DNA from: Podarcis bocagei
Taxonomy: Eukaryota
Reading direction: 5' to 3' (one strand)
DNA: 64,000 bases
Assembly: GCA_964188305.1 (NCBI GenBank)
Contig: OZ076885.1
Positions 12,501 through 63,560 of the stretch are shown here, one piece after another. The position numbers and the translations under genes are program-made. The first letter of the stretch is position 1; each line of letters opens with the position of its first letter. A model generated the notes under the pieces. That model was not told where the DNA came from. It was given only the letters and a program-made list of their open reading frames with translations, and ran no database searches.

Positions 12501-14309
12501 AGAGTACAGTCTTCAGCAATGCAGAATGGGAGGGCAGACTTGAGCAGTGATCTTTAAAATGGGAACAGGGGTGTTACAGGCGAATCCTTATTTTGTTAAA
12601 TATTGGAGGTTAGTACAGATGTGTTGGCAGGCTGAATCCATGCTTCGGACCGAACAAAAACTTCCACTCATGTAATGGTCTGCATAACTCTCATACAATA
12701 TTGATACCCTTTGTTAATGCAAGTTTACAGCAATAACATTTCACAGAATTTATAGTGTTATTCAATAATTAAATGCTCATCAAAAGCAAAATCAGGCCAT
12801 TTAGAAAATAAATGCCAGGTTGGAATCAGAGCTATAAATCTAGGATATTGGCGACTGTAAATTGGGAAAAGCTTTAAAATGCAATATCTGAAGTTCTGCA
12901 AACACTGGATTTGTAGACTAATATTCTAACAATTGTTCCAAATCCCACCATTGCTAATTTTGGGAAGATTAATGTTTAGATCCATTTTGGGAGGAATCCA
13001 TCCTTTTGAAAGTGGACATCTAATCATGAAATTGGGTGTCACCTTTCTTTCTTCCCCATCCCCTCACAGCTTCTCCCACATCGCCAAAATCTGCTTTGAA
13101 GCATGCTCAAGGGAGACACCGAAAACAGCAGTGGGGAGGAGATGAAGTTATAATCCCACTACGCAAGCAGAAGTCTATTCCACTCATGAGTGGACAGCAT
13201 TGAATTCCAAAGTAACACATCCTAAAAGATGAAAAGTGGGAGTGGGGGAGAAATGGACAACACTTTGCCCTTTGCAACTGCACTTATGTAGTTGTGTTTG
13301 CATGCATTGGCTGGGCCTAAACGTGGTTCACAAAATTCAAAGTTTGCAAAGCTTTTTCCAATGTACTGTAGAATTTATTTTTTATTTTTTGTGTGTGTTT
13401 CTGTAAAGCAACAAAATACCTTTAACCAACATTATAATTCACTATTGGCCATCAATCACTCTCTACTCAGACAGTGAAGTTTTTGTTAATGTCTGGTGAG
13501 GATATTTTCCTATAATACTTAGTATCAAGTCAATCATATGGCAAATTAAACTACAATAGACTCAGTTGATCTATGAGTGGTCAGGTTACAGTGAGTCATA
13601 TTAGTCCAAAACTATTGTGCTGTTCATATTCAAGCACCACTATATTTTTATATTACTTTTAATGTCAAATCAGAAGTGGACTTCACTGGCCTTCTTGAAG
13701 AGCAGACAAATATAAACCTGAGCCAGAAAAAGTTAAGGCTATAACCATATTTAAATAATGAGTGATGGCAAATATGCCACTTTTCTGTTAGTCAGTCTAG
13801 ACACCAGGGAGAGGGTGGAGACATAGATCTACTGCTTCCAACAGCAGCAAACATTATTCTTCCATGACATCTTATTCTGGTTCCTTGCTTATGACATAAG
13901 ATGCAAAGTAGGATTCAAATATATCACCCAGAGGTCCATGGTATGGAGAATGAAGTAGCCAGAGAAGACACCATACAGAAGCACTTCCCACACATTAGGT
14001 CCCCTAATACATGTACGTGTATCTGTGTATTATCAAAGTTATTGAGAGCAATTTCAAACCCAGAAGCTATTGTGTATGGATAAATTATTATTTTTCTTCT
14101 CCCATGTTGCAACAAAAAAAAAGTTTGCAACCAACATTTGCACAAATGTAAAAATTATGGTTCTAAAGAATTCAAGATGTACATGATTTTTGATCTTATT
14201 AAAGTCCTTCATTTTGAAACAACTTTTAAAAATGTAATCACCTTCACAGGTGAGCTGCTTTGTTTATCTATGGAGAACGATTTCATTGTGGATTGTAATT
14301 CTTCTAAGT

Positions 14310-14443
14310 AGTAGATAGGTAGCCGTGTTGGTCTGCCATAGTCAAAATAAAAAAATTCCTTCCAGTAGCACCTTAAAGACCAACTAAGTTAGTTCTTGGT
14401 ATGAGCTTTCGTGTGCATGCACACTTCTTCAGATACACTACAC
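14310..14443 (-). mobile_element. Short Penelope-like-element-derived insertion with 13-bp TSD
   Basis: Typical reptile PLE terminal sequence (gtagccgtgttggtc..gcaccttaaagaccaac..agctttcgtg..cacttcttcagat), flanked by AATTCTTCTAAGT at 14297-14309 and 14444-14456. Confidence 0.8.
14399..14436 (-). ncRNA. Minimal type I hammerhead ribozyme motif
   Basis: Minus strand reads GUAU-CUGAAGA-A-GUGUG(CAUG)CACAC-GAAA-GC-UC^AUAC: conserved core, 5-bp stem II, 4-bp stem I, palindromic AGCU in place of stem III. Confidence 0.75.
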
Positions 14444-16667
14444 AATTCTTCTAAGTGATTGTGATAATTTCTGTGAAGAACATCAGAAAGGAAAGTATTT
14501 ATATGGAAAGAACTTTATTTTGTAGAACATATGTTAGACAGATAGTTCTCATAGTATCTGAACTTGGGGAACTGTGGACTGGTAAACAGTGCTGAATGAG
14601 AACAGTGCTGAATGAGAATAAACCACAATCAAACTGGTTTCAGGTCCTGGCTTGTTGTGAAACTATTGTTTAAACAAACCACAGTTCCTGTCACAGGAAA
14701 CTCTGGTTAGTTTAAAATAAAAAAATGTTTCTAATCTTGTTCTCTGGAATACAAAAGAAGAGGTATGTGTGGGAAATCAACTCAATAGGTCATTCACATA
14801 TCAGGAAAACACAGTTTCTCATTACTACTGAACCAGGCAAGAATATGTGATGTACACATGCAAGTTTTCAATCAATCTGCTTTGGATATTCTGGCTTTTA
14901 AGGAAGCTGGCAGTGCATTTGCGAGTCAGGAATGGAAATATTCACAGGGCCACAGGTAGATGGTAATAGTACTGAAGATTTTAAATTATTATGTATATCC
15001 CTGAAATTCAATTCTGAGTGAGCATGTCACTTACAAATGTTTAAAATAGTTGTACTATTTCTTAGATATGAGCAAAAAAGATTTGCTTTATAAAAAAAAC
15101 CCCATAGAGGCATAAATACTGACGGTAGACTTTTACCCAGTCAGTGTTTTGAGTGAATTTATTTATTTGGTTTCAACTACCAGCATAAGTAATTAAGCAA
15201 CAGTGAACTTAAAAGGGGGGGTTTCCCCTTATGGTTGAATGATAGGATCTCTAACTCAGCCAATATTAAAAAATACTGATAACTTGCACTACATTTGAGC
15301 AAATGCCTATTTTGGCACATGTTGATTCTGAAAACACACATTGTTTGACCAATGAGCCATAACTCCTCACTGAAAGGCATTGTGAAAATCCCCCTTATTT
15401 CATGGATCATTGACCACTGTTTTCAAATCCTTCTTTTCTCGCAGGCCATAGCTCAGCTAATCATAAGGGTTCCAAATAGAAAGAAAATCCTTATGGTCTG
15501 ATGAGCAAATGAAGTAGCTTTCAATGCCCAACTCCCACAAACACTTATACATTTAAGTCCTACCCAAATAAATAATGTGGCCCCGATCCAGCTAAGGTTT
15601 AGGAGGAAGCCCTACTGAACTTACCTCCCGATTTGTGTACACTGATGGGAAAGGAAGATGACAAACAAAGGAGCACTTTCAAGCAAGTGTCAGAAGTGTT
15701 TTTAATACTGAATTTTAAATGGTTGTAACCCACCCTGTGACCTGCTGATGAAGGGAGGGAAATCAATATAATAATAGATTCAATCATCAACATCATCACC
15801 CCTGTCATGCTCTGTCCTGAGGAGAAATCTAAAAGGGCACAGCAAGGTGGGGCTGCTGTCACAATCCCAAAAGAGCTCCTAGTGAACAGCTTGCTTCAAT
15901 GAGGTCCAGAGGCAAACTTGAGACCTTTTGCACCTCCACCTCTAGTCCACCTCTCCTAAACTCTGCTCTGCTCCCTTTGTTGGAAAACTGCAGGCTCTTA
16001 AAGAGGCAGCCCTCTGGCCTGAAGATGGACTTCCTGTCTTATGTACTGTTCTATTATGTGATCAGTTGCTACAATTTACAGTTTGAAAACAAATGTAAAT
16101 TGATTTATTCCTAGACCTCTTTATTCCTTGGCCCAAAGATTAACAGAAGGCAGGGAGAGGGGATGGGGACTCTTCAAAATCATCTTAAAACACCCTGGCC
16201 TCAATCCAGTTAAGGTCAGTCATTTCTAAATGTCATTAGGACCACCAGAACTGGAGTTAGATACAAAATATTTGTTCCATTGGGTCAACCAGGCTTTAAT
16301 ACTGACTAGCATATTTCCTTTAGGGACACTGACTCCAGAGTTTAGCTTATCTTATTTCTATCCATATCAATGGGGTGGCAAGGACACACACCTAGAATAG
16401 GAGCATCCCCCTAAATTCAAAGATCTCTGTAGATCAAAGACAACAAATATTCTTTCATGGATGGGGGGTACACTTTATTAAAATGTGCATTTCTAGTATG
16501 CATCTACCACACCCATTTATAAGTACTTCCTATCTTTCTTTAGCAATTTCTGGCATTTACTGAAACTGTGAATTGGGCAGTTTAAAGTCTTTCAACAACA
16601 GTGAAGCTCTGTTAGTTCCAATACAAAAACAATGATGTGAGTGGTCACTGAATCTAAAACTCTGGTA

Positions 16668-22679: not shown

Positions 22680-23107
22680 TTGTTAGAATTCCTGCTCCAT
22701 GATTGCAGTCATGGGATTGTTGTCTTTCAAAAGACGGTATATGTTTTGACTCCACAGAGTGGGAAGTGACGGAGACAGGATGTTTGTGTTACTGTGTTCC
22801 GTGAAGGGGGACTATTGTCCTTTGTTCTTTCTCTTTGCTGTCTGATGCTAGAGAAAGAGGGAGGCATGTTGCAGTGCTCCATGAGTGTTTATATGTAAAT
22901 AAAGTAGATTAGCCAAAATGCTGAGGTCTGTTCCGCAAGCTGCGAAAACTCTGAGGATCCCTAAGTGTGCCGATGTCTGTTGGCATCAGTTGCTGTGATG
23001 TTCGGGCAGAAGAAAGCTTTTAAGCTCCCAAACGATCGACCAGGAGGGAGGGAACATGCCAGTCTCTTCCAGGGTCCTACTGGAGTGTAGGACGAGCTCC
23101 TGATACA
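22680..23107 (+). mobile_element. Probable solo LTR
   Basis: ~430 bp with TGT...ACA-type ends, internal AATAAA (~22898), ATATG direct repeat at both junctions, inserted into the L2. Confidence 0.55.
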
Positions 23108-30622: not shown

Positions 30623-31566
30623 CTTTACATTATGCTCCCAAACTGCACTTTTTTAATTTAAAAAAACAAACAATTTTTATTGTTTTTTAAACAAATAAAA
30701 ATACAATAACTATCAAACACTTCTCCAGCATTCCACATTAATTGCCATCAGTCTTGTGATCTCTTTCAATTTGTTTTCCAAGCACTCAGTTTGAGTCAAA
30801 ACCCGATGTCACACGTGCCTGCTATTTTCAGCATGCAACTTATTTTAACAACACATGTTAATCATTGAAATACATAACAGACCTTTAAGCCAGACTACAT
30901 AAAACAGTGTATCTGTCATATAACAGTGAATGTTCTCTATTTTCAACTCCATTCACAATTTAATGAAATTAATGTATTTATTTGGTTACTTTCATCACAA
31001 CTTTAAAAGGTAGGACTCTATCCCAAAATAAACCCCTCATACATCAATATTTGAAAGGACATTTTTATTCAACCAAAGATGGTTTGACCTTTTGTCTGAA
31101 GAAATATTTATGTCTTGATTCCAGCATGATACATGTCAATGCTGGTTTATTCTTCCAGTAAGCATCATGATTTATAACATTTATTGCCACTCCTCAAAGC
31201 ACACAGTTATTAGCATTGTAAAGTTAACTCTGATAAAAGCCACTAACACTTCAATCCCACCTGTGTCTACTCAGAAGTAATCCTATGGAATTCAGTGACA
31301 CTTGTGAAGAAAGTGTGCTTATAGCACTCCTTTGCAAAGTAGACCACACTTTGTGCCTATAGCTCTCAGGGGGGAGGAAATTCTGGGGCTCTGGGGCTCT
31401 TTGGCCAACTCTTAAACATGGGCCACATGACAGCATCTAGTTATTTTAATCATCCCCCTGCCAAGATCCCTATCCGTTTTCAAGGGGAGAAGAGCCTGCA
31501 CCCGACTCCCTGTCTCTCCCAGAGATCTAAGCAGCCTGTTTTTCTCTGTCAACCCTCATTCTATAG

Positions 31567-32300
31567 CAGTGTTTCCCAACCTTTTTTGGGCAAAGGCACA
31601 CTTGTTTGAGGAAAAAAATCTCGCGGCACACCACCATTACAGCCCCGTGACGTCAGCGCGCAGCGTCACGCCGGGAGGGACGCACGAAAGTGAAAGTTTT
31701 CAATTTTTCCCCTCCCCCTTGCCGGGGAACCTCCAAGCTTTGGGGGTGGGGGGGGAGGAGGCAGCAAAGCGAGGGACTGAGGGACGGCGGCAGCTGAGGC
31801 GGCGGCGGCTGTTGTGGTGGTGGCGGCGATAGCGGGCGGAGGAGGGGGCGGCGGCAAGGCCGAGGTGGCCGGCGGCGGCGGGGGAGGCAGCGGCGGGTGG
31901 AGCAGGAGGGCGGCCGAGGCCGGTGAGGGAGTAGGGTTGCCCGGGGCTTGAGGAGCCGTCGCCGGGAGTTGCTGCTGCTGTTGTTGCTGCTGCTGCCCGT
32001 ACATGCCGGCCTCCTCCTCGTCCGCTGTCTCGCGCTCCTCCCTTTTGCACGCGCTGCCCCGCCACCGCCCCATTGGCTGGGTCCTGTCAGCTGATCCTGT
32101 GTTATTTCCTGTGTGTGTGTGTGAGGGGAGAATGGAGAGAGAAGCCTCGGCACCACCACCGCGGAGCCACCCCCGGCTCGACGCGGATCCTCGCCGCCGC
32201 CGCCTCTCACCGCCCGACTCGCCCGCCTCCCTCCCACGGCACACCAGCCAACTTCTCACGGCACACTAGTGTGCCGCGGAACACCGGTTGGGAAACACTG
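31567..32300. mobile_element. Non-autonomous hAT element carrying GC-rich cargo
   Basis: Perfect 15-bp TIRs CAGTGTTTCCCAACC / GGTTGGGAAACACTG, perfect 8-bp TSD TTCTATAG (31559-31566, 32301-32308), subterminal CGGCACAC repeats. Confidence 0.95.
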
Positions 32301-32453
32301 TTCTATAGCTTTGTAGCATAAACCAAGGGTCTTAGGCTCATGGGAGGGTTTTCTTCAACCCTGTGAGTTGGCAGTAAAGCCAATTTGTTAAATATATAAC
32401 ATTTCTTAGGGATGAAAAGCGCAAGGGAGAGAACAAAGGGACAAAACAGACTA

Positions 32454-32693
32454 CAGTGGTACCTCAGGTGAAGAACTTAATTCGTTCCGGAGGTCCGTTC
32501 TTAACCTGAAACTGTTCTTAACCTGAAGCACCACTTTAGCTAATGGGGCCTCCTGCTGCTGCCACGCTGCTGCCACGCAATTTCTGTTCTCATGCTGAAG
32601 CAAAGTTCTTAACCTGAGGTACTATTTCTGGGTTAGTGGAGTCTGTAACCTGGAGTCTATAACATGAAGCGTCTGTAACCCGAGATACCACTG
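32454..32693. mobile_element. Tc1/pogo(Tigger)-type MITE, copy 4
   Basis: TIRs and TA TSD. Confidence 0.92.
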
Positions 32694-38050: not shown

Positions 38051-39127
38051 AATCATAGAATCATAGAGTTGGAAGAGACCACAAGGGCCATCGAGTCCAA
38101 CCCCCTGCCAAGCAGGAAACACCATCAGAGCACTCCTGACATATGGTTGTCAAGCCTCTGCTTAAAGGCCTCCAAAGAAGGAGACTCCACCACACTCCTT
38201 GGCAGCAAATTCCACTGTCGAACAGCTCTTACTGTCAGGAAGTTCTTCCTAATGTTTAGGTGGACTCTTCTTTCTTGTAGTTTGGATCCATTGCTCCGTG
38301 TCCGCTTCTCTGGAGCAGCAGAAAACAACCTTTCTCCCTCCTCTATGTGACATCCTTTTATATATTTGAACATGGCTATCATATCACCCCTTAACCTCCT
38401 CTTCTCCAGGCTAAACATGCCCAGCTCCCTTAGCCGTTCCTCACAAGGCATCGTTTCCAGGCCTTTGACCATTTTGGTTGCCCTCCTCTGGACACGTTCC
38501 AGTTTGTCAGTGTCCTTCTTGAATTGTGGTGCCCAGAACTGGACACAGTACTCCAGGTGAGGTCTGACCAGAGCAGAATACAGTCGCACTATTACTTCCC
38601 TTGATCTAGATGCTATACTCCTATTGATGCAGCCCAGAATTGCATTGGCTTTTTTAGCTGCCGCGTCACACTGTTGGCTCATGTCAAGTTTATGGTCAAC
38701 CAAGACTCCTAGATCCTTTTCACATGTACTGCTCTCAAGCCAGGTGTCACCCATCTTGTATTTGTGCCTCTCATTTTTTTTTGCCCAAGTGCAATACTTT
38801 ACATTTCTCCCTGTTAAAATTCATCTTGTTTGTTTTTGCCCAGTTCTCTAATCTGTCAAGGTCGTTTTGAAGTGTGATCCTGTCCTCTGGGGTGTTAGCC
38901 ACCCCTCCCAGTTTGGTGTCATCTGCAAATTTGATCAGGATGCCCTTGAGTCCATCATCCAAGTCGTTGATAAAGATGTTGAATAAGACCGGGCCCAAGA
39001 CAGAACCCTGTGGCACCCCACTAGTCACTCTTCTCCAGGATGAAGAGGAACCATTGATGAGAACCCTTTGGGTTCGGTCAGTCAGCCAGTTACAAATCCA
39101 CTGAGTGGTAGCATAGTCAAGACCGCA
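38051..39127 (-). mobile_element. Young 5'-truncated CR1 LINE (RT C-terminal half plus 3' tail)
   Basis: ORFs contain [43 protein letters not shown] and RRLRGD CR1 RT motifs. (ATTCTATG)n-type 3' tail at 38051-38067. Confidence 0.97.
38125..39127 (-). pseudogene. CR1 ORF2 reverse transcriptase fragment, one +1 frameshift in an A9 run at ~38774-38782
   Basis: Two supplied ORFs (38771-39265, 38125-38754) join as ...[15 protein letters not shown]... if one A is removed. Confidence 0.9.
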
Positions 39128-39299
39128 TGACCATACGCTGAAAGAATTTGAAACAAGAGCAAAACTAAATAAGGCACCCAACTTTCCTAGATGAAGGCAA
39201 ATAAAAGATTTTGTTTTAGCACCCAAAAGTAAACAGGAAGTTTTATAGAAGGGGGTCATGATCAAAATGAGATCTGTCTTATGTTCTCATTTGTATCTA

Positions 39300-52839: not shown

Positions 52840-53680
52840 GGACACCAGTGGCGGGAGGCAGCAGTCACACAACTCATTTGTCCCAGAGCAGTCGCATTAA
52901 GATCAGTGGGGCTAATCCAGTGTAAACGAGTTGCGGCACTCCTGGCGCAAGCCAAGGGGGAAGGAGCGAGGCCCAGGCAAACTCTGCAGCCAAGCCTGCC
53001 TGGAGAAGCAGCACTGAAAGGAAGATAAAGCGTGGCCGGCGGCTGCGGCGGCTCCCCCGCCCCCCAGCCCAGTCCCGCCGCTGTGGCGAGGGGTGTTGCA
53101 AGGCAGAGGCGCTGCGGCGCGTGTTCTTCGCTGCTGGCCCGCGGCTGCCACTCGCCCCCAACGAGCCGGAGCCGCCGCGCCATCTGTGGGGAAACTTTGG
53201 AGACAAACCACCAAACCCCCTGCGGACGCCTCACCTCCCACTTTCCCTGCGGACCCTGCCGCCGACGGCGCACTTGGCCGCCTCTGTATCCCTCCTCAGC
53301 GGTCGCTTCCAACAGAGCAGAGCTGGGTGGGGGGGTGGGTTAAGTTTGAAGAAGTTCGGCCGGCGAAGCACCCTTCCCCTCCCCCCCGCCGCCGCGTGCG
53401 CGAGGATCGCCAGCTAACCCTAAAGGCAGCCAGCGCCTTCCTTCCTCGGGAATTAGAAGGTCGTTGATTGAGAGGAAGGGCCTGAGAATGCAAATGACCT
53501 TCTTCCTTCTCCCTCCCCGACAGCCTATTCCCGCCGCTCTCCGCCGAAGAGCGTTGAACTGCCCCTCTGCCGAGCAGGAGGAGGCGGCGGCGGCTGCAGG
53601 AGCAGCAACCACGGCTTGCCTGAAGCTCTGCTCCTTGTGACTGACTGCACAGGGGGCGGGAGAGCTGCTGCCTGCAAGCA
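52840..53680. promoter_or_regulatory. Second CpG island / candidate alternative promoter
   Basis: Very GC/CpG-rich, GC boxes (cccccgcc, cccgcc), minus-strand donor GGGAG|GTGAGG at 53235. Confidence 0.75.
53235..53400 (-). other. Candidate alternative first exon
   Basis: Donor GAG|GTGAGG inside the CpG island; 5' boundary is a guess. Confidence 0.4.
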
Positions 53681-55149
53681 AAGTTTCTTCTTATAGTCCT
53701 CAGGAGGGGCTAAAGACTTTTCCTGCCAGTTTTCCCAAGGACCTGTGTTCAGTTGCAAGCACAGGTGTAATTGTCCTATATCCTTTGGCCATTTTTTTAA
53801 AAAAGAAAGAAATATATGCTAGGAACTTCCCCCCCCCCCCGTATCCACACTGGCTGATTTTAGTTCCCTCCTCCCAAATAACTTTTTTCTTTAAAAAGGA
53901 AAAAACAAAACTCCTCTCGCCAAACTTATTGTATTTGATGTATGGCTTCCCCAATACAATTGTTATGAATTGCTCTCCTTATATTCTTTGGCCTTTCATG
54001 GCCAGCTGAGGGGAGAGATTGCAGAGTTATTGTTTGCTTTCTCTCTCAGCCCCCCTCCCGTTCTCTCATTGCCTATTCTAAATTTGATGCCGAAGTTGAA
54101 GTAGTTGAATTGGCTAATTCTGAATACAGGCTATTGAGAGAGGCCAGACACAGCAAGTATATCCCTGTATAGCAATGGATACAATGTGCTGAATTGGCAG
54201 TCTAATTATAAATGTGGCATTTGGACCTCCTTTCAGAGAGCCAGTGCCACCTTACCTTATGAGGGAACTTCAACTACAGCAACTGTTCAAAACAAAATGC
54301 CATTACAGGATCAGCTTCACCCAACACTGGGACTAGCCAGGGGATTGTTTTACAAACAGCCTTTCTCACTTAACACAAGAATGTATTATAAGAAACGCAG
54401 TTATGGAGAAGGAGGCAGAGTTTAAAGAAAACGCTTAAGCAGTTCTCTGCCAGGTGTCAAGCTACTTCAAGCTGCAAACGTAATCCAAGTAACCTAATTA
54501 TTTTCATTCAAATATGTACCTCCCTAAAAATACATTGGAGGAGAGGATCAGATTTATTTTTAATTTTTTAAAAAAGATTAACTTCGAGATACGGTTACTA
54601 ATTATAAAAGGGAGATATCATACATACAGAAATCGGATGCCAAAAAGCGAGGGAGAAGAGTCTTAAGATACATCATCTTGCACAGGGCTTCCAAACGTTT
54701 TAGACAGAGGTTCGCGTTGCAGGGCAAATTTTGTGTCCATCTTAAAAACTATTTGCTTTGTGGCAGAGCGGTTTGATGCAATGAGCCCACACAAGGGAGT
54801 CAGTATAACAAGTGCAATCTAGCTGCAATCTCAAAGCAGTTTCTACAACACTACCACCTGCCCACCCAACCACAGTCAAACCCACCCAGCTACAGGGTTT
54901 TTCAAAATGTAAAAAGTCACTTTAGACCGAGATGCCCACCAGTTTCAATCACACCGTCCTTTTAAAAATGAAAATATGTTTTAAATGTACGTTCCTCTCC
55001 CCTTTCAAATTAAAATTAGGTTCAAAGCTGCTCACCCTACTACGATGGGCTATTAAAAAAAAGAAACCCACATGCAACCTGTCTCCTTTATCTGCATAAC
55101 AACAGGCGCAGATACGCTTGTTTATCTCGTTAAGTTTCCCTGTCTGTGT

Positions 55150-55500
55150 TTTTGGGGGAACACCCAGGAGGACGTAGCTAATCTCCTGACCGCAGGCTCC
55201 CAAGCCCCGGCGAGATCACCCTGACACACAGACACAACAACGCTCAGTTGCCTTTTCACATTTGCCACCTCTTCCTTCTCGCCGTCCCTAAAAAAAACAC
55301 ACCCGGGAAACGAGTCCTCCGCAAAGGAGAGGTGGCGGCAATCAAATCAATATGATCTGCGCCTCTGATTGACCCCAAGGCCCTGCTCTGCTCCTCAGAC
55401 GCGCGCGCACACAAGGAACCCCGGCTGCAAAGCGGCTCCAAGGCGCTCCCAAAGGTGGCGGGGGTGGCGGGGGAGAGCTGGAAGACTTCAGATCTCACAG
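55150..55500. promoter_or_regulatory. Small CpG-rich patch between the two islands
   Basis: Local CpG enrichment (gcgcgcgc, ggcggggg repeats). Confidence 0.4.
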
Positions 55501-55756
55501 CAACAAAAAGCCCGTTATATACACTCGTGCAAGTTGTATGTGTGCGTGGTACAGTGTCATGTTGTATACATTTATATACACACACCTTCGTGTACTCTGT
55601 CCCATACATACGACACACACACACCTGTTTTACTACTGGATCAAACAGAGAACTTTTAACTCCTGCCAAACGCCCTCTCTCATATATAACTTTAGGAATA
55701 TTTGTAAGGCGACATTTCAACAATACAACGTAAAGCAAAATAAAAGCACCAGGTGA

Positions 55757-55808
<52 letters not shown>

Positions 55809-55810
55809 AC
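55757..55810. repeat. Compound (CT)n(CA)n microsatellite
   Basis: Read directly from the sequence. Confidence 0.95.
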
Positions 55811-56142
55811 AATGCCTGGCTAAGTGACATGCAATTTTTCAGAGACAAACCAGATTTACAATAGAAGATTGAAAGATCTTCAAAATAAATTACATCAAAC
55901 CCATCTTAATTTTTTTTTAAAAAAAGATCCTTCTTCAAAAATGACAAACAAGAAGCACCACTTATGAAAAAAAAGGGGGGGGACTAGCGCTCCCACCAAA
56001 CCACCTTGCTGCCTCCCTACCATCTCTGCAAAGTATGCTTAAAACTGCGGTTGAAGGCAGTTTCCCTGAGATTAAAGTTGCGCGAAATAACAACAGAAAA
56101 CGACGACAGTAATACAAAAGAAAATACGTTCTGGGAACTTAC

Positions 56143-56440
56143 TTTGCGTTTACTTTAGGCACTATTCTTTTCTTCCAGCTCGCAAAGGAAGCCGTTTTGT
56201 CCAGGTTAGGTATTGTCTACTTATGAATCAGCCCGTGGCTACGGGGTTTATTTTAATTTATGGCTTATGCATTCTTTTAAGGTCGATTTGCATGACCTCC
56301 GGCGAGAGCTAAGACACAGCAAGAAATCCCCAGCTGAATGTTGGGCGAGCCCACAATGCAGCCAAGAGCTCCCCTTCTCATGGTGTAAGCAGAGCCCTGT
56401 GTGTTGTTGGGCTCTCACTCTTTTTTCTCTCTCTCCCCCT
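56143..56440 (-). other. Candidate alternative first exon
   Basis: Donor CAAA|GTAAGT (last exon base 56143) in the promoter cluster; 5' boundary is a guess. Confidence 0.35.
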
Positions 56441-56554
56441 CCCTGTGGAACACAAATTAGGGTGTGATATCAATTTTAAAGTTTTCAGTATAACTTTATC
56501 CCAGCCTCTGCCTGCGGAGAGATAAGGCACCACAGGAACAGCAAATCCTCGATA

Positions 56555-56598
56555 CACTGCCCCTCTGTGGTCAAATCCAGCATTACCACCTAGCGGTA
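56555..56598 (-). promoter_or_regulatory. CTCF-like motif pair
   Basis: Minus strand has CCGCTAGGTGGTA (56583-56598) and a weaker CCACAGAGGGGCAG (56555-56573), both resembling the CTCF core. Confidence 0.3.
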
Positions 56599-57075
56599 TA
56601 ATACTCTCTCCCCCCCCCCCCCTTTCTCTTAAGGATCTGTTCTACAGATATATAAGCACACTAGCAGCGAACTTCTCGGCAAGTTTAACCACCACAAAGT
56701 TAACAGAGAAATTAGAGGCGCTAGCAAAGCCCCCTTGTTCCTTCATCCTTACTATCTCCAAGGGTGAGGACTTCGGAGGAATGGCAGAAGCTTTAGGCTC
56801 CCAAAGATTGATTTAAGGGCTTTATATTTTTCCTCGCTCGCCTGCCTCTGTTGGTATCACTCTTACGCGCAGTATCTCTAGAGCGCCATGTGTTCGCAGG
56901 CAGCGGGTGATCTTAAAATACAACGCTGATCTGTCACTACGTTTTAAAATAGACACACCACTTGGAGGGCGGAAAGGAAAGGGGGTGGGAAGCAGCAGCA
57001 GCAGCAGTGTTGTGATTTCAGAGAGAAGCGGGATCTTTTTTACGCAGCCTCAGGATCCTCCCCAGAGCAACTCAC

Positions 57076-57220
57076 CCCAGGTCAGAAGCGTAAGGACTTT
57101 CTCCACCAGTTCGCCTCTTCCCATCCCATCCCAGTCGGCGCCGCCGCCACCAATACCGCCCTCCCCAAAAAGTCCAGCACTAAGCAGCCGCGCCGGGGAT
57201 TCATTCAGAAATCTCCCTAA
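57076..57220 (-). other. Candidate alternative first exon
   Basis: Donor CTGGG|GTGAGT (last exon base 57076) inside the CpG island. Confidence 0.35.
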
Positions 57221-57529
57221 CTTCACAATCTACCTCCGGACGCCGCTATTGCGGCTGCTGCTAATGCTGCTGCTGCTTTGGTCAATTGCAACCAGCAAGC
57301 CCTTAAAAGACAGCGGGGAGGGGGGGGGGAGAGAAACAATACCGTATTCTCTGGTATAAAGCGACACATACAAAACGTGGAAGCCCCTTTTCAAAACACG
57401 ACTAAGGAACGCGTCCGCCGTCTCTCCCCCCCCCCCCAGCCCAACCAGGCTGCGCACCACACACGACCAAGTCCACAACAGGTATCAGCAACACAACGAG
57501 CGCTGCGCCGGTTTGCTTTTCCTAGTTAC

Positions 57530-57890
57530 CTCCTTCGAGATCCAGTGTGGCGTTTTATAAGCCTTGGGGGTCCTTCCTTTAAAAACAATAACAACAATAA
57601 ACAAACAAACAAACTGCCGTAGCCGGACGGAAGGAAGGAAAAGGTGAATGAGTGTCTGTAGGGCTGGATAAACAAGCTGCAGAAATACTAACGAAAGGAA
57701 TAAATTCACTGAGCTACTGGCTGGCTGCGTTTCTTCGGGCCACGGATGCGCAGGATCCAGATCGTCAGGAGAAGTTTGCTGACGGGTTGCCTGGAGATTT
57801 AGTTACAATCGGGTTCATTATTGTTTGTTGTTGGGCTTGGCTTCCCCCTCCCTGCTCCCCCCGCCTCTCTCTCTTTTTCTCTCTCTCCCC
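57530..57890 (-). other. ENOX1: Non-coding first exon (5' UTR) of a minus-strand gene, probably ENOX1
   Basis: Lies in a CpG island and ends in a minus-strand donor GAAGGAG|GTAACT (last exon base 57530). The sequence ACAATAATGAACCCGATTGTAACTAAA..CCAGGCAACCCGTCAGCAAACTTCTCC..ACGCCACACTGGATC resembles my recollection of the amniote ENOX1 5' UTR (not database-verified). TSS position is approximate. Confidence 0.6.
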
Positions 57891-58913
57891 TCCTGATACA
57901 AGCGAAGGCGCTGGTTTACTGCTGTCAATCTTGGCAATCAACGTGAGCGGCCATGTCGTAAGTATTCAAAGCATTTCCCGTCGTGCAACATCAGAAAGTG
58001 AGTGGCCAGGAGCATTGATCGGAGGAAGGCGAAAGGAGGCAGGGCTGCTATATCGCCGCCGCCGCCGCCGCTTCTCTCTTCTTACCCCCACCCCCGACGG
58101 CAAGGCAAGACGAGGCAACAACACACACCAACAAGCACACAGCCGGGAGGCAGGGAGGGAGCGGTAAAGGGGGGGGGGAGCGTGGAACCGAACGACCCAG
58201 GAGAAAGTGAGCACAAAAGAGAAAGTGAAATATCATTTTCTCTCCCTCCCTCTCCCCTCTCCTCCCCCCCACAACAGGGGCGCGCGCGCACTCCTAGCCA
58301 CAATCCACACCCCCCCCCCCGCTTCCCCCTTCCTTCGCAGTCGCCACTCATCACAGAGCGGTTGGCAGACGGCTGCAGTCCTACGCGCTCTTTCCTGGGA
58401 GTAAACACTTTGGGGCACAGCGGGACAATCCGCAGCCTTCCGGGCTGCTAGATTCTTAAGCGCGCATCTCTGAACATAGTTCGCGCTGAAGTTAATCAGA
58501 TTTGCTTTCAAGTAAACGTGTTCAGCGTTTAGTGACGCTTCACCTCCCCCTCCCCCTCTTGGGGGCTTTGGTTTTAAGGGAACTTAAGACTCCCGTGGCA
58601 AATGTGTCAGTCGGACTGTCAGCCGTGCAACCGCATTCTGTGCGTGTTTACTTCGAAGTAAGCCCCGCTATGTTCCGTCAATGACGCTCACTGCCAAACG
58701 CGTGTGTGAAGAATTAAAGTTATACCCATTCATTTCAATAGAACTTCCTGTCAAGGAAGCAACTGGGGGAATCCTGCCAAAAGTAAGGACATTCATTTAA
58801 ATGAGAGCTTTAAGCAAGTGCTTAATTTTGGCTGCATCGTGCCCTCCTGGTTGCTTCCGTTGAGTTCCACTGATTTATCTGGATCTTATGTGCAGATGGG
58901 TTAATTAAACCTC

Positions 58914-61900
58914 CATCCTAAGAATATTTATACAGACGTAAATCCCACTATATAGGATTACAGCCGCGCTGCCAGATCCTATGCTTATTTACTCAGAAGC
59001 TTCCGGCTGATTTCAGTGGGATTTACTTAGGTCATGCTGCGCGCGCTTTTAACCTTCGGTGCTATTCTAACCACGCTCACTTGCAAGCAAGTCCCGTTGA
59101 AATCAATAGGAATTACTTTCAAGGCAACTGATGTTTAGCCTTCAATCCTATGCCCCACTTACTTACTTGAAGCAAATGAGTCTTTCTTCTGAGTAGACGT
59201 ATACAGGAGGGCGCTATTAGGTTGGGATAGGAAGGAACCCACATTGACTTTAAACACAACTGCACGCCGATCCTCCTACATAAACTTACCTGGATGTGCC
59301 GCTGAGTTCATTTGGACATTCAGTAAATGCGTTTAAGAGTTGCTGCGTTGTTCCCTTGACTGAAATCAATGGGGCTTACTCGCAGGGAGGTGCGTAAAAG
59401 CTATGATACGGCATGATTTTTTGAATCTATCGAGCCATGGTGCTTAAGAATGGGATCTTGTAGACGTACTTACTTGAGTTGCACGACTAACACTGACCGG
59501 TAAGGCAAGGCTTAATGGAAAACTGGAGAGGGGAAGGGGGTGGCCCAGTGGGTCAAAAGGGGGAGCGGGGCGGGGAGGACCCTTCCTTCCAAGAGAAGTG
59601 ACTGCAGGGTTTTTCCTTCCCGCGCATTATGTACTGGAACTTTTAGGGGAAGACAAGGTAGAGGGTGCGAGAACAGAAGAAAGGCGGAGAGGAGCCGGGA
59701 ATAAGAGGGAGGTCAGCAGAGAAACTAGAAGGAGGGAAGACACAGAGGCTCATATAGGAAATGCGGCCTGCAATCCTAAACCCCGCTGGGAAGCGCTCGT
59801 CCGCAGGCTTACATAGAAATAAGTCTCGCCAACCTCGGTGAGTCTCACAACTTAGTAACTCTGCACAGAATCGCAGTGAGCTTTACGGACTGACTTCCTG
59901 GGAATGCTCTTCAGGATGCTCAGGTGGCGGAGAGAGTTGTAAAAGAAGACTTAGGCTGGCTGCAAAGTTTCTCTCGCACTCTTACTTTGGAAGAAGTTCC
60001 GTTGACAACAGTGGGGCTTACTCCGGAGTAAGTACATACAGCAGAAGGCTGCTAGAAGTCACTCGAAACTCGAGAAGGCAAGGTCAGGTGGCAGGCTGCG
60101 GTCTTCGGCACTCGCACTTGGTCACAGAAATCCAAAGAGTTTACTCGGACTAACCCTAAACTAACTTACCCGGGACTTGCTTCTGCGTAGACACGGTTAG
60201 CTAGGATTGCGGTATTACTTCCTATTCCCTTACTTAACATCAACTACGGATAGGTTCGGGGTGCGCTAGAGATGCAAGGCGGCAGTTCACTAGAAGGAGG
60301 AAGAGGGGTGTGTGTTTTTTAGAGTTTTGGGTCGAGCTGAAGAACTCCGCTGAATTCAACTCTCTCAAAGTGGCCCCTTCGACTTTCGCTGGGCGGAATC
60401 GCGACTTGCGAAGTGTTCCGAAGGCACATGAGGCCCCCGCTGGGCTGAAGCTAAGCAGGACCGAGAAAGGGCGAACGTCTGCATGGGAGACCGCATGGGA
60501 AGCACGTGTACGCCGTCCTGGGTTCCGCGATGGAGGAAAGAGGGGATATTATAAACAGAGTAATAAACATTAATTGATACGCGGGTGCTGGGCGGTCGCA
60601 AAGGAACACTGGCGCATAGCTCGAAGCGGGCCAAGAGAACAGGACCCTAAGTTATGGGTTCAAGCTGAACTGCTGGTTTGCTGTTCCTGAGGGTGCATCG
60701 CCCGAAAACCAACGGGAGGAGGCATTTGAGGAACTTTCACTTCCTTAGAAGTGTTAATTAGAAGCCGAGGCTGGGGAAGAGAAGTAGAACTGTGAAGAGA
60801 TGGAGAGAATAAATCCAAAAGAGGGGTGTGGGTGTTTAATGTTGCATGAAAGAGAAAAGTCTCTCAATCATTTTCTTTTTAGGAATTTTTTTTAAAAGGT
60901 GTGTGGGGCAGTCAACCCTTGAAAGAGGCTTTTCAAAGTGCCAGGAGGCGCCGGGATCATGTGAGCAACCACCAGTGGAAAAACTTAGCGCGCCTCTCTC
61001 GCCCTTTTGATATTCTTCGCACCTCGACGCAAGGGGATGCGAGGCGGAGGGCGCGCGGGGGGCAGCCGCCTCCCCCCCCCCAGGCCCCCAAAACAGAAGA
61101 GGCGCTTTGTGGGTCCGCCTTTGTGCTTGGGGGCCAGGCCGGTCCCATCACCACCTACTGCTTTCGCAGATCAAGACGGGGGAACTTTTCTGTTTCCAAA
61201 ATAGCTGCACGCGTTTCCAAAAGGCCAAGAATGGAGCATCACTGCTGTGTCTGAAGTCCCCAAATGGGCGGGTTTGGTTGGGATCCCAGCACCTACCTGG
61301 GCAGAGCGCTCGGCGCAATATAGTCAGCCACCCAAATCCTAGGGATGAACAGCGAAACAGCGAACTTGCCCTAATCTGGTTTCATTTCAATTCACGTGGG
61401 GAGATTGATCTTTCAAAACTTAATGAAAGCGTTTCTTCTTTTCTCATCCGCTAACAAGACCACGTAAAATATTCTGGCCCATTTAAATGCGCGTTTCGGA
61501 GGAATAAGTAGTTTTAAGTTTGCAACCCTATGTACACTTACCTTAGAGTAAGTCCACTTACATTCAATTGAACTTGCTTCTGGGTAGACATATAAAGGGT
61601 TGCTCTGAAAAAGTCGGGATCGCTAGAAATTTTCTAGTTCTTGTTTACATTTTAATTCTGATATTCCTCCCCAGTTAAAAAGGCAGTCCTTTGCTAACCT
61701 GCATTCCTGTTTCTCTTCCCGCGTTTTAATTTATCCGGTTCTTCTGCACAGCTTTTTTCCTCAAAATTTCCTAAACTGCACATCTACAACACATCCTAAT
61801 TTTGACTATTCCTTTCCTTTCATTCAAATTGTTTTCTTACCAACAAAGTTTGCACCTAGCGCCTTTCACGATTTTCACTAAACTTATTTATCCTAGTTTA

Positions 61901-63560
61901 GTTTATACATTATCATGAGGGAGACTCGTGCATTTTTAAAAACCCACATTTTAATTGCCATAAAGTCTGAGATTCTTTTTCCAATCTTGTGTTAATAAAT
62001 CGACACACAAATTATTAAGATGTATATGGAGCAACATTTCTTCCCCCATCGAGTGATAAGATCTAAAACAAATCCCTTGCTGTTGAGAGACTTGTGTGAT
62101 TCGTAAACTTGCCTACTCCTGCACCCAAAATACGCACAAAGTCTAAGAAGAGACTTAATTTTACCTGCAGTGTCCCCTCCCCCCAACACCCCGATTCCAA
62201 CCTGGCTAGCCTTTCCTTGCAGCGAGATCTATAAGAAAACGACCCAAATGCGCACTTTGCGAGGGAACGCCGGCTGCTGCCTGATGCTCTGCCCTCGGAT
62301 GCCTGCATTACCGAGCCCTGTCGGGCGTGTTGTGTCAATCAATGCACGGAAGAAGCATCAGGTGGGAGATGCACCAGGAACCAAACTCATGTCCATGCAG
62401 GCGACTGGGGAGCATCTTTTGCAGCGCCGGAGGCTGAGAGCGCACGACAAATATTTCCAAACTTAGGGAGAACAAAACTCGCCCGCGGGAGACATTTGGA
62501 ATTTTTGCAACCCCGGGGTGACGATTCTTTTAGTTATATCAAAGTGCGGAAATCAGAATTAAACAGATCAAGAGGTACACAGACGTATCCCGGCACTGCG
62601 CTGCCCTCAGGGTAGAATTCAACACGCCAGTCTGGCTGAGCCCTACTCTAAACACTGCGCAATGGGAATAAGTCCCATATTGCCGTTATTCGGCCTCATT
62701 TTAAGGAGGGGGGGAAAGTCATCCCAGAGAAGTGACTGCGAGCTGCTAAGGAATCGGATGCCGGTCTCCGAAGAAGGCTTTTTGATCTGAACGGGACTTT
62801 CCCCTACTGGAAGCTGAAGGAATCCCGGCAGGGCTTTGGAGAATAAAAACTAAAAACCCCAGTGCCTCTACCAGGCGATTTCATGCCGATCATCCAGCCA
62901 CAGTCTTAGTGCTGGGCTGCTGAATCGGATGAAGAGGAGACGAGCAAGATTCGGACTTGCTACCACGTGCGGCCCAAATCCTATGCACACAGTTAGGAGC
63001 GCCTATGCCGCTAGAAACTTCTGCAGGACCTTCAACTTTTCTGAGATCAAGGTTAGGAAGGGAGAGATGTTCTGTTCTCGCAAGACTTTCTACAAATGGT
63101 GCAGAATCTCTCTCTTCCCTGACACTGCTGACTCACACAGGAGAACTGAGGGAGGCACACTTGCCACCCTCAACACGCTGCCTCGCAGACAAGTCTCCCC
63201 AAAACCTAAGGCCTCCCAAGTCCAGGTGTGTAACATCTCCGGTGCCCCCGTCTAGAAGCACATGGATGATCTAAAACCACGTTCATTCTATGAAAGCACA
63301 ACAAGGCGTGAGGCTACGATCCTAACCGCTCCCTCGTTACTTGAGAGTAAATCCCGCTGAAGCTGGCAGGGCTAACTGGGCAAGGATGCTTTGCTTGGAA
63401 GAAAGGCTGCAGTCTTAAACAGTTTTATTAGGGGCAGCAAGTTTCCACTGAGCTCAGGTTAACATGTCGGAGTAAATTTAAGTAGGACCGGGCGCAACTC
63501 AACGGGGTTCAGCTGCCAGTAAAGTTTTGTGGAAAACTTACCCCACTGGGTAAAGTCTAC
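58914..63560. repeat. Cluster of ~15 diverged ~85-bp palindromic mini-elements
   Basis: Recurring pattern (gc)aatccta..acttac..gagtaagtccc..tga..tca..gggacttac..gagta..taggattgc. Cleanest copy is 61522-61603 (GCAACCCT...AGGGTTGC). Confidence 0.75.

Follow-up and report, generated by a model that had tools for sequence, protein, structure and literature searches.

Plants provide well-documented cases in which cut-and-paste transposons have captured gene fragments. The plant Pack-MULEs belong to the Mutator superfamily and have long terminal inverted repeats (TIRs) and target site duplications (TSDs) of 9-10 bp; they contain no transposase, carry fragments of host genes, often their GC-rich 5' ends, and form families. 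In animals, captured gene fragments are mostly single, immobile copies. A survey of 100 animal genomes identified 370 Pack-TIRs, of which 208 were hAT elements and only four were multicopy (Tan et al., 2021; PMC8277862); its main text makes no mention of lizards. Pack-hAT-N8_XT of Xenopus tropicalis is present in three copies and carries 291 bp of the CAPSL 5'UTR (PMC8277862). A second vertebrate case is HelibatN3 of vespertilionid bats, a Helitron with the NUBPL promoter, six codons and a splice donor (PMC4778049). A search of one literature library found no paper combining RANBP9, transposon and lizard.

We analysed a window of 64,000 nucleotides from Podarcis bocagei (assembly GCA_964188305.1, contig OZ076885.1), which contains a 734-bp element that, by its sequence, is a hAT-superfamily Pack-TIR. 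Elements of this kind have already been catalogued in animals. The 734-bp element shares with the Pack-MULEs the presence of TIRs, the lack of a transposase, a GC-rich 5' fragment of a host gene and membership of a family. The resemblance to Pack-hAT-N8_XT is closer in kind, both being non-autonomous hAT elements with TIRs and a TSD that contain copied 5' DNA of a host gene; the frog element later moved to other sites with distinct TSDs, and the present one presumably also spread by transposition. The two differ in that at least 16 paralogous gene models of Podarcis muralis are related to the present element, and in that its cargo includes both promoter-proximal and coding sequence. HelibatN3 may be considered its nearest functional analogue, since in both a DNA transposon of vertebrates picked up the promoter of a gene together with the start of its first exon and was amplified, scattering promoter-like DNA. 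However, HelibatN3 is a rolling-circle element that captures by read-through at its 3' end, is present in thousands of copies and has been shown to trap exons, whereas the element described here is a cut-and-paste hAT and has no splice donor in this copy.

The features of the element are listed in Table 1. A sequence-only reading of the window had proposed perfect 15-bp TIRs and a perfect 8-bp TSD, and both were exact at the ends of the element. The TIR CAGTGTTTCCCAACC occurred exactly twice in the 64-kb window, once at each end and with no mismatches, and no further copy, such as a cognate autonomous hAT would carry, was present there. The TSD TTCTATAG lies directly outside both ends and is identical at 8/8 positions. 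Perfect 15-bp inverted pairs within 2 kb of each other are expected by chance at a rate of ~0.12 per 64 kb, and the expectation for such a pair with an adjoining perfect 8-bp duplication is ~2e-6. The element has a GC content of 0.67 and contains 68 CpG dinucleotides, with an observed/expected (o/e) CpG ratio of 0.83; in its core (31640-32230) these values are 0.70 for GC and 0.85 for CpG o/e. The 5-kb flanks on the two sides, in contrast, have CpG o/e ratios of 0.28 and 0.20 and GC contents of 0.41 and 0.39, so that the description of the interior as CpG-island-grade DNA in an AT-rich, CpG-poor setting was borne out.

Table 1. Features of the transposon copy at 31567-32300 and of its target site, in window coordinates.
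Feature	Coordinates	Strand	Remarks
Left TSD, TTCTATAG	31559-31566	.	Fits hAT target nTnnnnAn (T2 and A7)
Left TIR, CAGTGTTTCCCAACC	31567-31581	+	Exact match; CAGTG start fits hAT YARNG
Left subterminal shell	31582-31640	.	One CGGCACAC (31624-31631, +); GGCACAC (31595-31601)
Tail between RANBP9 fragment and left shell	31641-31791	-	TGACGTCA at 31648-31655; ORF stop at 31666-31668
RANBP9 coding fragment, ATG and ~65-71 codons	31792-32004	-	blastn to L001; tblastn with P0001
RANBP9 5'UTR and promoter-proximal DNA	32005-32231	-	CCAAT at 32076-32072; GGGGCGG box; (CA)n at 32115-32128; 22-nt block at 32210-32231
Right subterminal shell	32232-32285	.	Three CGGCACAC: 32237-32244 (+), 32259-32266 (+), 32269-32276 (-)
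Right TIR, reverse complement of left	32286-32300	-	Exact match
Right TSD, TTCTATAG	32301-32308	.	Identical to left

The target consensus of hAT elements is nTnnnnAn, and TTCTATAG fits this consensus, a single site being weak evidence. The first bases of the TIR agree with the YARNG motif at which hAT TIRs start (PMC3014272), and the two ends are complementary at 15/15 positions. Taken together, the 8-bp TSD, the ends and the target site place the element among the non-autonomous hAT-type transposons, the class to which it had been provisionally referred. Two elements of Anolis carolinensis, hAT-N3_AC (TIR CAGTGGTTCCCAACCT, 600 bp) and SPIN_NA1_AC (TIR CAGTGKTTCTCAACCT, 745 bp), resemble it in having an 8-bp TSD, a TIR of 15-16 bp and a size of 600-745 bp (Novick et al., 2011; PMC3014272). 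The comparison is one of TIRs and not of interiors; the TIR of hAT-N3_AC is one base off that of the element (14/15), and that of SPIN_NA1_AC also agrees at 14/15 positions. The TSD of the element fits the NYYTARRN consensus of the two Anolis elements at 5/6 constrained positions. No gene cargo is reported for either of them in PMC3014272, from which the words 'captured' and 'host gene' are absent. We do not assign the element to the SPIN (Space Invaders) family, the likeness to SPIN_NA1_AC being that of the TIR.

No Pfam family was matched by any of six ORFs of the element, and we therefore conclude, in agreement with the sequence-only reading, that it encodes no transposase. The octamer CGGCACAC occurred five times in the window as against 0.48 expected, and four of the five copies were located within the two ends of the element, in the ~70 bp inside each. 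These subterminal copies are candidate transposase-binding repeats. A match to CGGCACAC at 22965 was considered as a possible related element and was rejected on inspection. If the repeats are used to place the extent of the hAT shell, it covers about 31567-31640 and 32232-32300 and encloses an interior of ~590 bp; these boundaries between shell and cargo are approximate, since copies of the family were compared at the protein level only.

A minus-strand ORF of 112 aa, with its ATG at 32004 and its stop at 31666-31668, was reproduced exactly as first described. This peptide and a 197-aa ORF were compared with an index of 5.8 billion proteins, and the only matches were P0001 and P0002, both ORFs of Logan assemblies, whose contigs (L001 and L002, respectively) were retrieved. 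P0001 (153 aa) starts with MSGQQ and continues with a Q/P/A-rich stretch containing LLLHPP, which is followed by non-repetitive sequence up to a GT donor. Residues 24-149 of P0001, including the LLLHPP region, matched Ran-binding protein 9 in the PDB (7nsc_A) with an E value of 1.1e-41, whereas the match of RANBP10 was limited to the last 50 residues, at the start of the SPRY domain. On this basis, L001 is identified as exon 1 of RANBP9 from another squamate. Its exon-1 splice donor is intact, and the TIR was not found in L001 with up to 3 mismatches allowed. The sequence-only reading had looked to a TIR-less locus of the parental type as confirmation of a capture, and L001 is a locus of that type.

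Positions 32012-31811 of the element (minus strand) aligned by blastn with L001 1537-1726 at 76-78% nucleotide identity (E ~1e-40), with the ATG in register. At the protein level, the match to RANBP9 reached about residue 65-71 (tblastn with P0001), and P. muralis models that start with AAAASAGPMP put the breakpoint directly after the AAAASA of the element, at residue 71 or about position 31792. Through the alignment with L001 and the match of P0001 to 7nsc_A, the interior, which had been thought to be the 5' end of another gene, can be recognised as that of RANBP9, with ~230 bp of promoter-proximal and 5'UTR sequence and the first ~65-71 codons. The CCAAT box reported on the minus strand is also present (Table 1).

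The link to RANBP9 thus runs through the nucleotide alignment and P0001, and not through the 112-aa peptide itself, which fails to reach RANBP9 in protein searches because it is of low complexity. A phmmer search with the peptide against 1.84 billion representatives gave only P0002 and two low-complexity matches, and nothing meaningful was obtained from the PDB. BLASTP against P0001 was not significant after composition adjustment, despite identity at 27/33 residues, and none of eight element ORFs was present in an exact look-up in a collection of 15 billion. The poly-Q/P/A nature of the peptide, the BLASTP result and the empty PDB search could indicate that the GC-rich interior is the native sequence of the transposon family, and that it resembles RANBP9 only as an artefact of low-complexity CAG and GCC runs. 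We consider such an artefact highly improbable, however, as the alignment with L001 holds with the low-complexity (dust) filter on (E = 3e-40), and the observed score of 158 bits exceeds by ~125 bits the maximum of 32.8 bits obtained from 200 dinucleotide shuffles of the element. In addition, the ATG context is in register, the P. muralis copies run on into the non-repetitive SPRY start of RANBP9, and other CpG islands of the window reach at most ~35 bits.

The 3' half of RANBP9 exon 1, which encodes the SPRY start, was absent from the entire 64-kb window. The window is therefore not the RANBP9 locus, a possibility that we rejected on this ground, and the native splice donor is missing from the copy; with a crude PWM, no donor-like 5' splice site was detected after the ATG inside the element. 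Sequence likeness is all that speaks for a genuine RANBP9 exon 1 with an independent MITE insertion on either side, or for an assembly artefact, and either is hardly credible when a single identical TSD brackets the inverted ends, half of the exon is nowhere in the window, and the flanks are AT-rich and CpG-poor. No parental locus or second copy was found within the window, the best other matches (CpG islands and a GC-rich repeat) scoring ~35 bits. The contig L002 (Logan contig ERR14042001) aligned with 32019-31845 of the element with 159/163 identities and one 12-nt gap. It begins 15 nt upstream of a RANBP9-type ATG and has Ser at codon 2, but was rejected as the parental gene, as it departs from RANBP9 after codon ~49 into unrelated CpG-rich DNA and has no TIR. 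Past the ~49 codons, L002 (1-1751) consists of CpG-rich DNA with an exon-like ATG...GGgtgagt, followed by AT-rich DNA, and no hAT end was found in it within 1.6 kb. L002 is thus a chimera that arose in assembly at a repeated sequence, or else a copy that is truncated or composite.

Upstream of the coding region, the landmarks follow each other in the same order in the element and in L001, namely a 22-nt block, (CA)n, the CCAAT box and the ATG. The block (32210-32231) matches L001 1220-1241 at every position, but in the opposite orientation to the coding match, and the similarity extends to 53 nt at 75% identity (window 32182-32231 against L001:1189-1241). This inverted orientation counts against a simple copy of the 5' region of RANBP9, and we offer no explanation for it. 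The ~150-bp tail on the other side of the coding fragment (31641-31791) had no match in the RANBP9 locus L001. Residues 71-99 of a P. muralis model (P0130), on the other hand, matched positions 31742-31656 of the tail with 72% identity (E = 6e-10), and since the tail is common to this model it is likely to be content of the family, whether shell, intron piece or filler. The CRE palindrome TGACGTCA noted in the earlier reading is present, and sits in this tail, outside the demonstrated RANBP9 DNA. The cargo had been described as a promoter and exon-1 piece, and this holds for the 5' region and ~65-71 codons of RANBP9, while the rest of the 112 residues would be read-through into the tail. Codon 2 of the element is Tyr where relatives have Ser, and two Pro-to-Leu changes separate its ORF from both L001 and L002. 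Because of the Ser2Tyr change, the two Pro-to-Leu changes and the read-through, the ORF is best read as a relic that probably has no coding function.

A search with P0001 returned many short UniRef entries from Podarcis muralis, which with a cluster look-up amounted to at least 16 distinct sequences. All 16 models contain the conserved end of RANBP9 exon 1, and they differ from one another at residues that are invariant across vertebrates, as would be expected of decaying paralogous copies and not of one gene. Residues 1-31 of P0013 and seven relatives were 100% identical to a shifted frame of 31987-31895. Three models (P0025, P0046 and P0131) start with RGGGGEDPRR, the translation of 32207-32178 in the upstream block, joined to RANBP9 exon 1. 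Four others (P0009, P0124, P0126 and P0129) close with HYKG, then GWETL, the translation of the TIR GGTTGGGAAACACTG, and lastly residues that differ between them. The long forms contain the whole of exon 1 and read on past its donor. These models show, as far as protein sequences can, that many P. muralis loci combine RANBP9 exon-1 DNA, cargo-specific sequence and a hAT end. The evidence for multiple copies consists of the 16 protein models. Some junctions in the models may be introns introduced by gene builders and not deletions, and exact deletion points were not read from them; a RANBP9 model from a mole (P0049) has the same kind of skip. A scan of metagenomes for the right end of the element gave 0 matches.

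As cargo and shell are combined in many P. muralis models, the capture would have taken place once, earlier and elsewhere, and the element is, on these comparisons, a transposed copy of an already chimeric and amplified wall-lizard family. The proposal that the start of a gene was captured and mobilised is therefore retained, with the amendment that this copy would have arrived at the site as a finished chimera. The concern that the interior might be the consensus of a high-copy hAT family without a source locus was half justified, as it is multi-copy family content, yet a TIR-less source exists. Single-copy Pack-TIRs mostly arise by gap filling in situ (Tan et al., 2021; PMC8277862), and a hAT MITE at this site could have had its interior replaced by RANBP9 DNA through this transposition-independent route. 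This is very unlikely here, given that the same combination of RANBP9 and shell recurs in P. muralis with different residues after the TIR; furthermore, gap filling is biased to nearby donors, whereas the window is not near RANBP9. We favour, with a probability of about 0.85, a non-autonomous hAT Pack-TIR ('Pack-hAT') that contains the 5' end of RANBP9, would have captured it once elsewhere, and has presumably spread by transposition. The hAT anatomy of the copy, the origin of its interior from RANBP9 and the many paralogous P. muralis copies linked to the same ends carry this interpretation.

The long forms read past the exon-1 donor, and the present copy includes upstream DNA that does not look transcribed; the capture therefore drew on genomic DNA and not on mRNA. 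In the mechanism that we propose, the RANBP9 CpG island had a hAT element in its vicinity. During replication or the repair of a gap, a template switch may have brought flanking or ectopic sequence into this element, which is the route that the FoSTeST model proposes for multicopy Pack-TIRs of animals (PMC8277862). Such an event could have been favoured if the element, like some other hATs, was biased towards open 5' regions. In human cells, the hAT element TcBuster showed a weak preference for CpG islands and transcription units (PMC3499496), which makes the proximity of a hAT element to gene starts plausible. The chimera would then have been moved in trans by a related hAT transposase, for which the 15-bp ends, and probably also the subterminal copies of CGGCACAC, would have served as recognition sites. 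As it reached many sites in wall lizards, length variants would have appeared, with internal deletions giving rise to short forms like the 734-bp copy. One such short variant, without the 3' half of exon 1 and its donor, would have inserted at TTCTATAG, leaving an orphan CpG-island-like patch in AT-rich, CpG-poor DNA.

The insertion had been judged recent on account of its undecayed CpG dinucleotides. That the CpG density has been retained points to a young insertion or to one protected from methylation, and the perfect TIRs and TSD bound the age only loosely, allowing up to ~10% divergence; the copy may nevertheless be young. The same CpG density (o/e 0.83) in a CpG-poor setting, together with the CCAAT and GC boxes upstream of the ATG, raises the question of whether the carried promoter is active and gives rise to sense transcripts into a host gene or to an orphan non-coding RNA, as in the case of HelibatN3 and NUBPL. 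The promoter captured by HelibatN3 can drive chimeric transcripts (PMC4778049), and some P. muralis models extend from RANBP9 exon 1 across the TIR and into the flank. We nevertheless regard an active promoter as unlikely at this locus, where the copy is without the native exon-1 donor and the crude PWM gave no donor-like site after the ATG.

Taken as a whole, the family may represent a notable vertebrate example of gene-fragment capture, whereas the single copy adds little beyond another insertion, namely one dated insertion with a known source gene, and is on its own probably neutral. A hAT family that spreads a promoter-proximal region together with a coding start offers a natural system in which to study how TIR elements acquire host DNA, whether dispersed CpG-island fragments stay unmethylated, and whether they have founded new promoters or first exons. 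It is conceivable, though doubtful, that this lacertid hAT shell habitually captures gene starts with CpG islands, and that its RANBP9 version is present in dozens of copies, far beyond the three-copy cases catalogued in animals. If so, it would be the first cut-and-paste counterpart of Pack-MULEs and HelibatN3 in a vertebrate, and would have seeded the genome with orphan CpG islands and with DNA that could serve as new promoters.

Elsewhere in the window, no host exon was identified from ORFs of at least 90 aa, and an Rfam scan of the whole window matched no family at gathering thresholds, including at 14297-14456, a candidate hammerhead ribozyme core. A LINE remnant with two adjacent ORFs is located at 38125-39265 on the minus strand; the upstream ORF (38771-39265) matched Pfam RVT_1 (E = 3e-17), and the remnant is an ordinary retrotransposon fragment. 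Ten ORFs around the CpG-rich region at 52-63 kb had no match in Pfam. This region contains a second CpG island (52850-53700; GC up to 0.71, o/e 0.6-0.96) and smaller CpG-rich patches as far as 62350, with a (CA)n run near 55770-55810 among them, and may represent, over 52850-62350, the start of a gene or clustered regulatory DNA. Finally, a stretch ~140 bp to the right of the insertion (32440-32600) resembles a SINE-type repeat.
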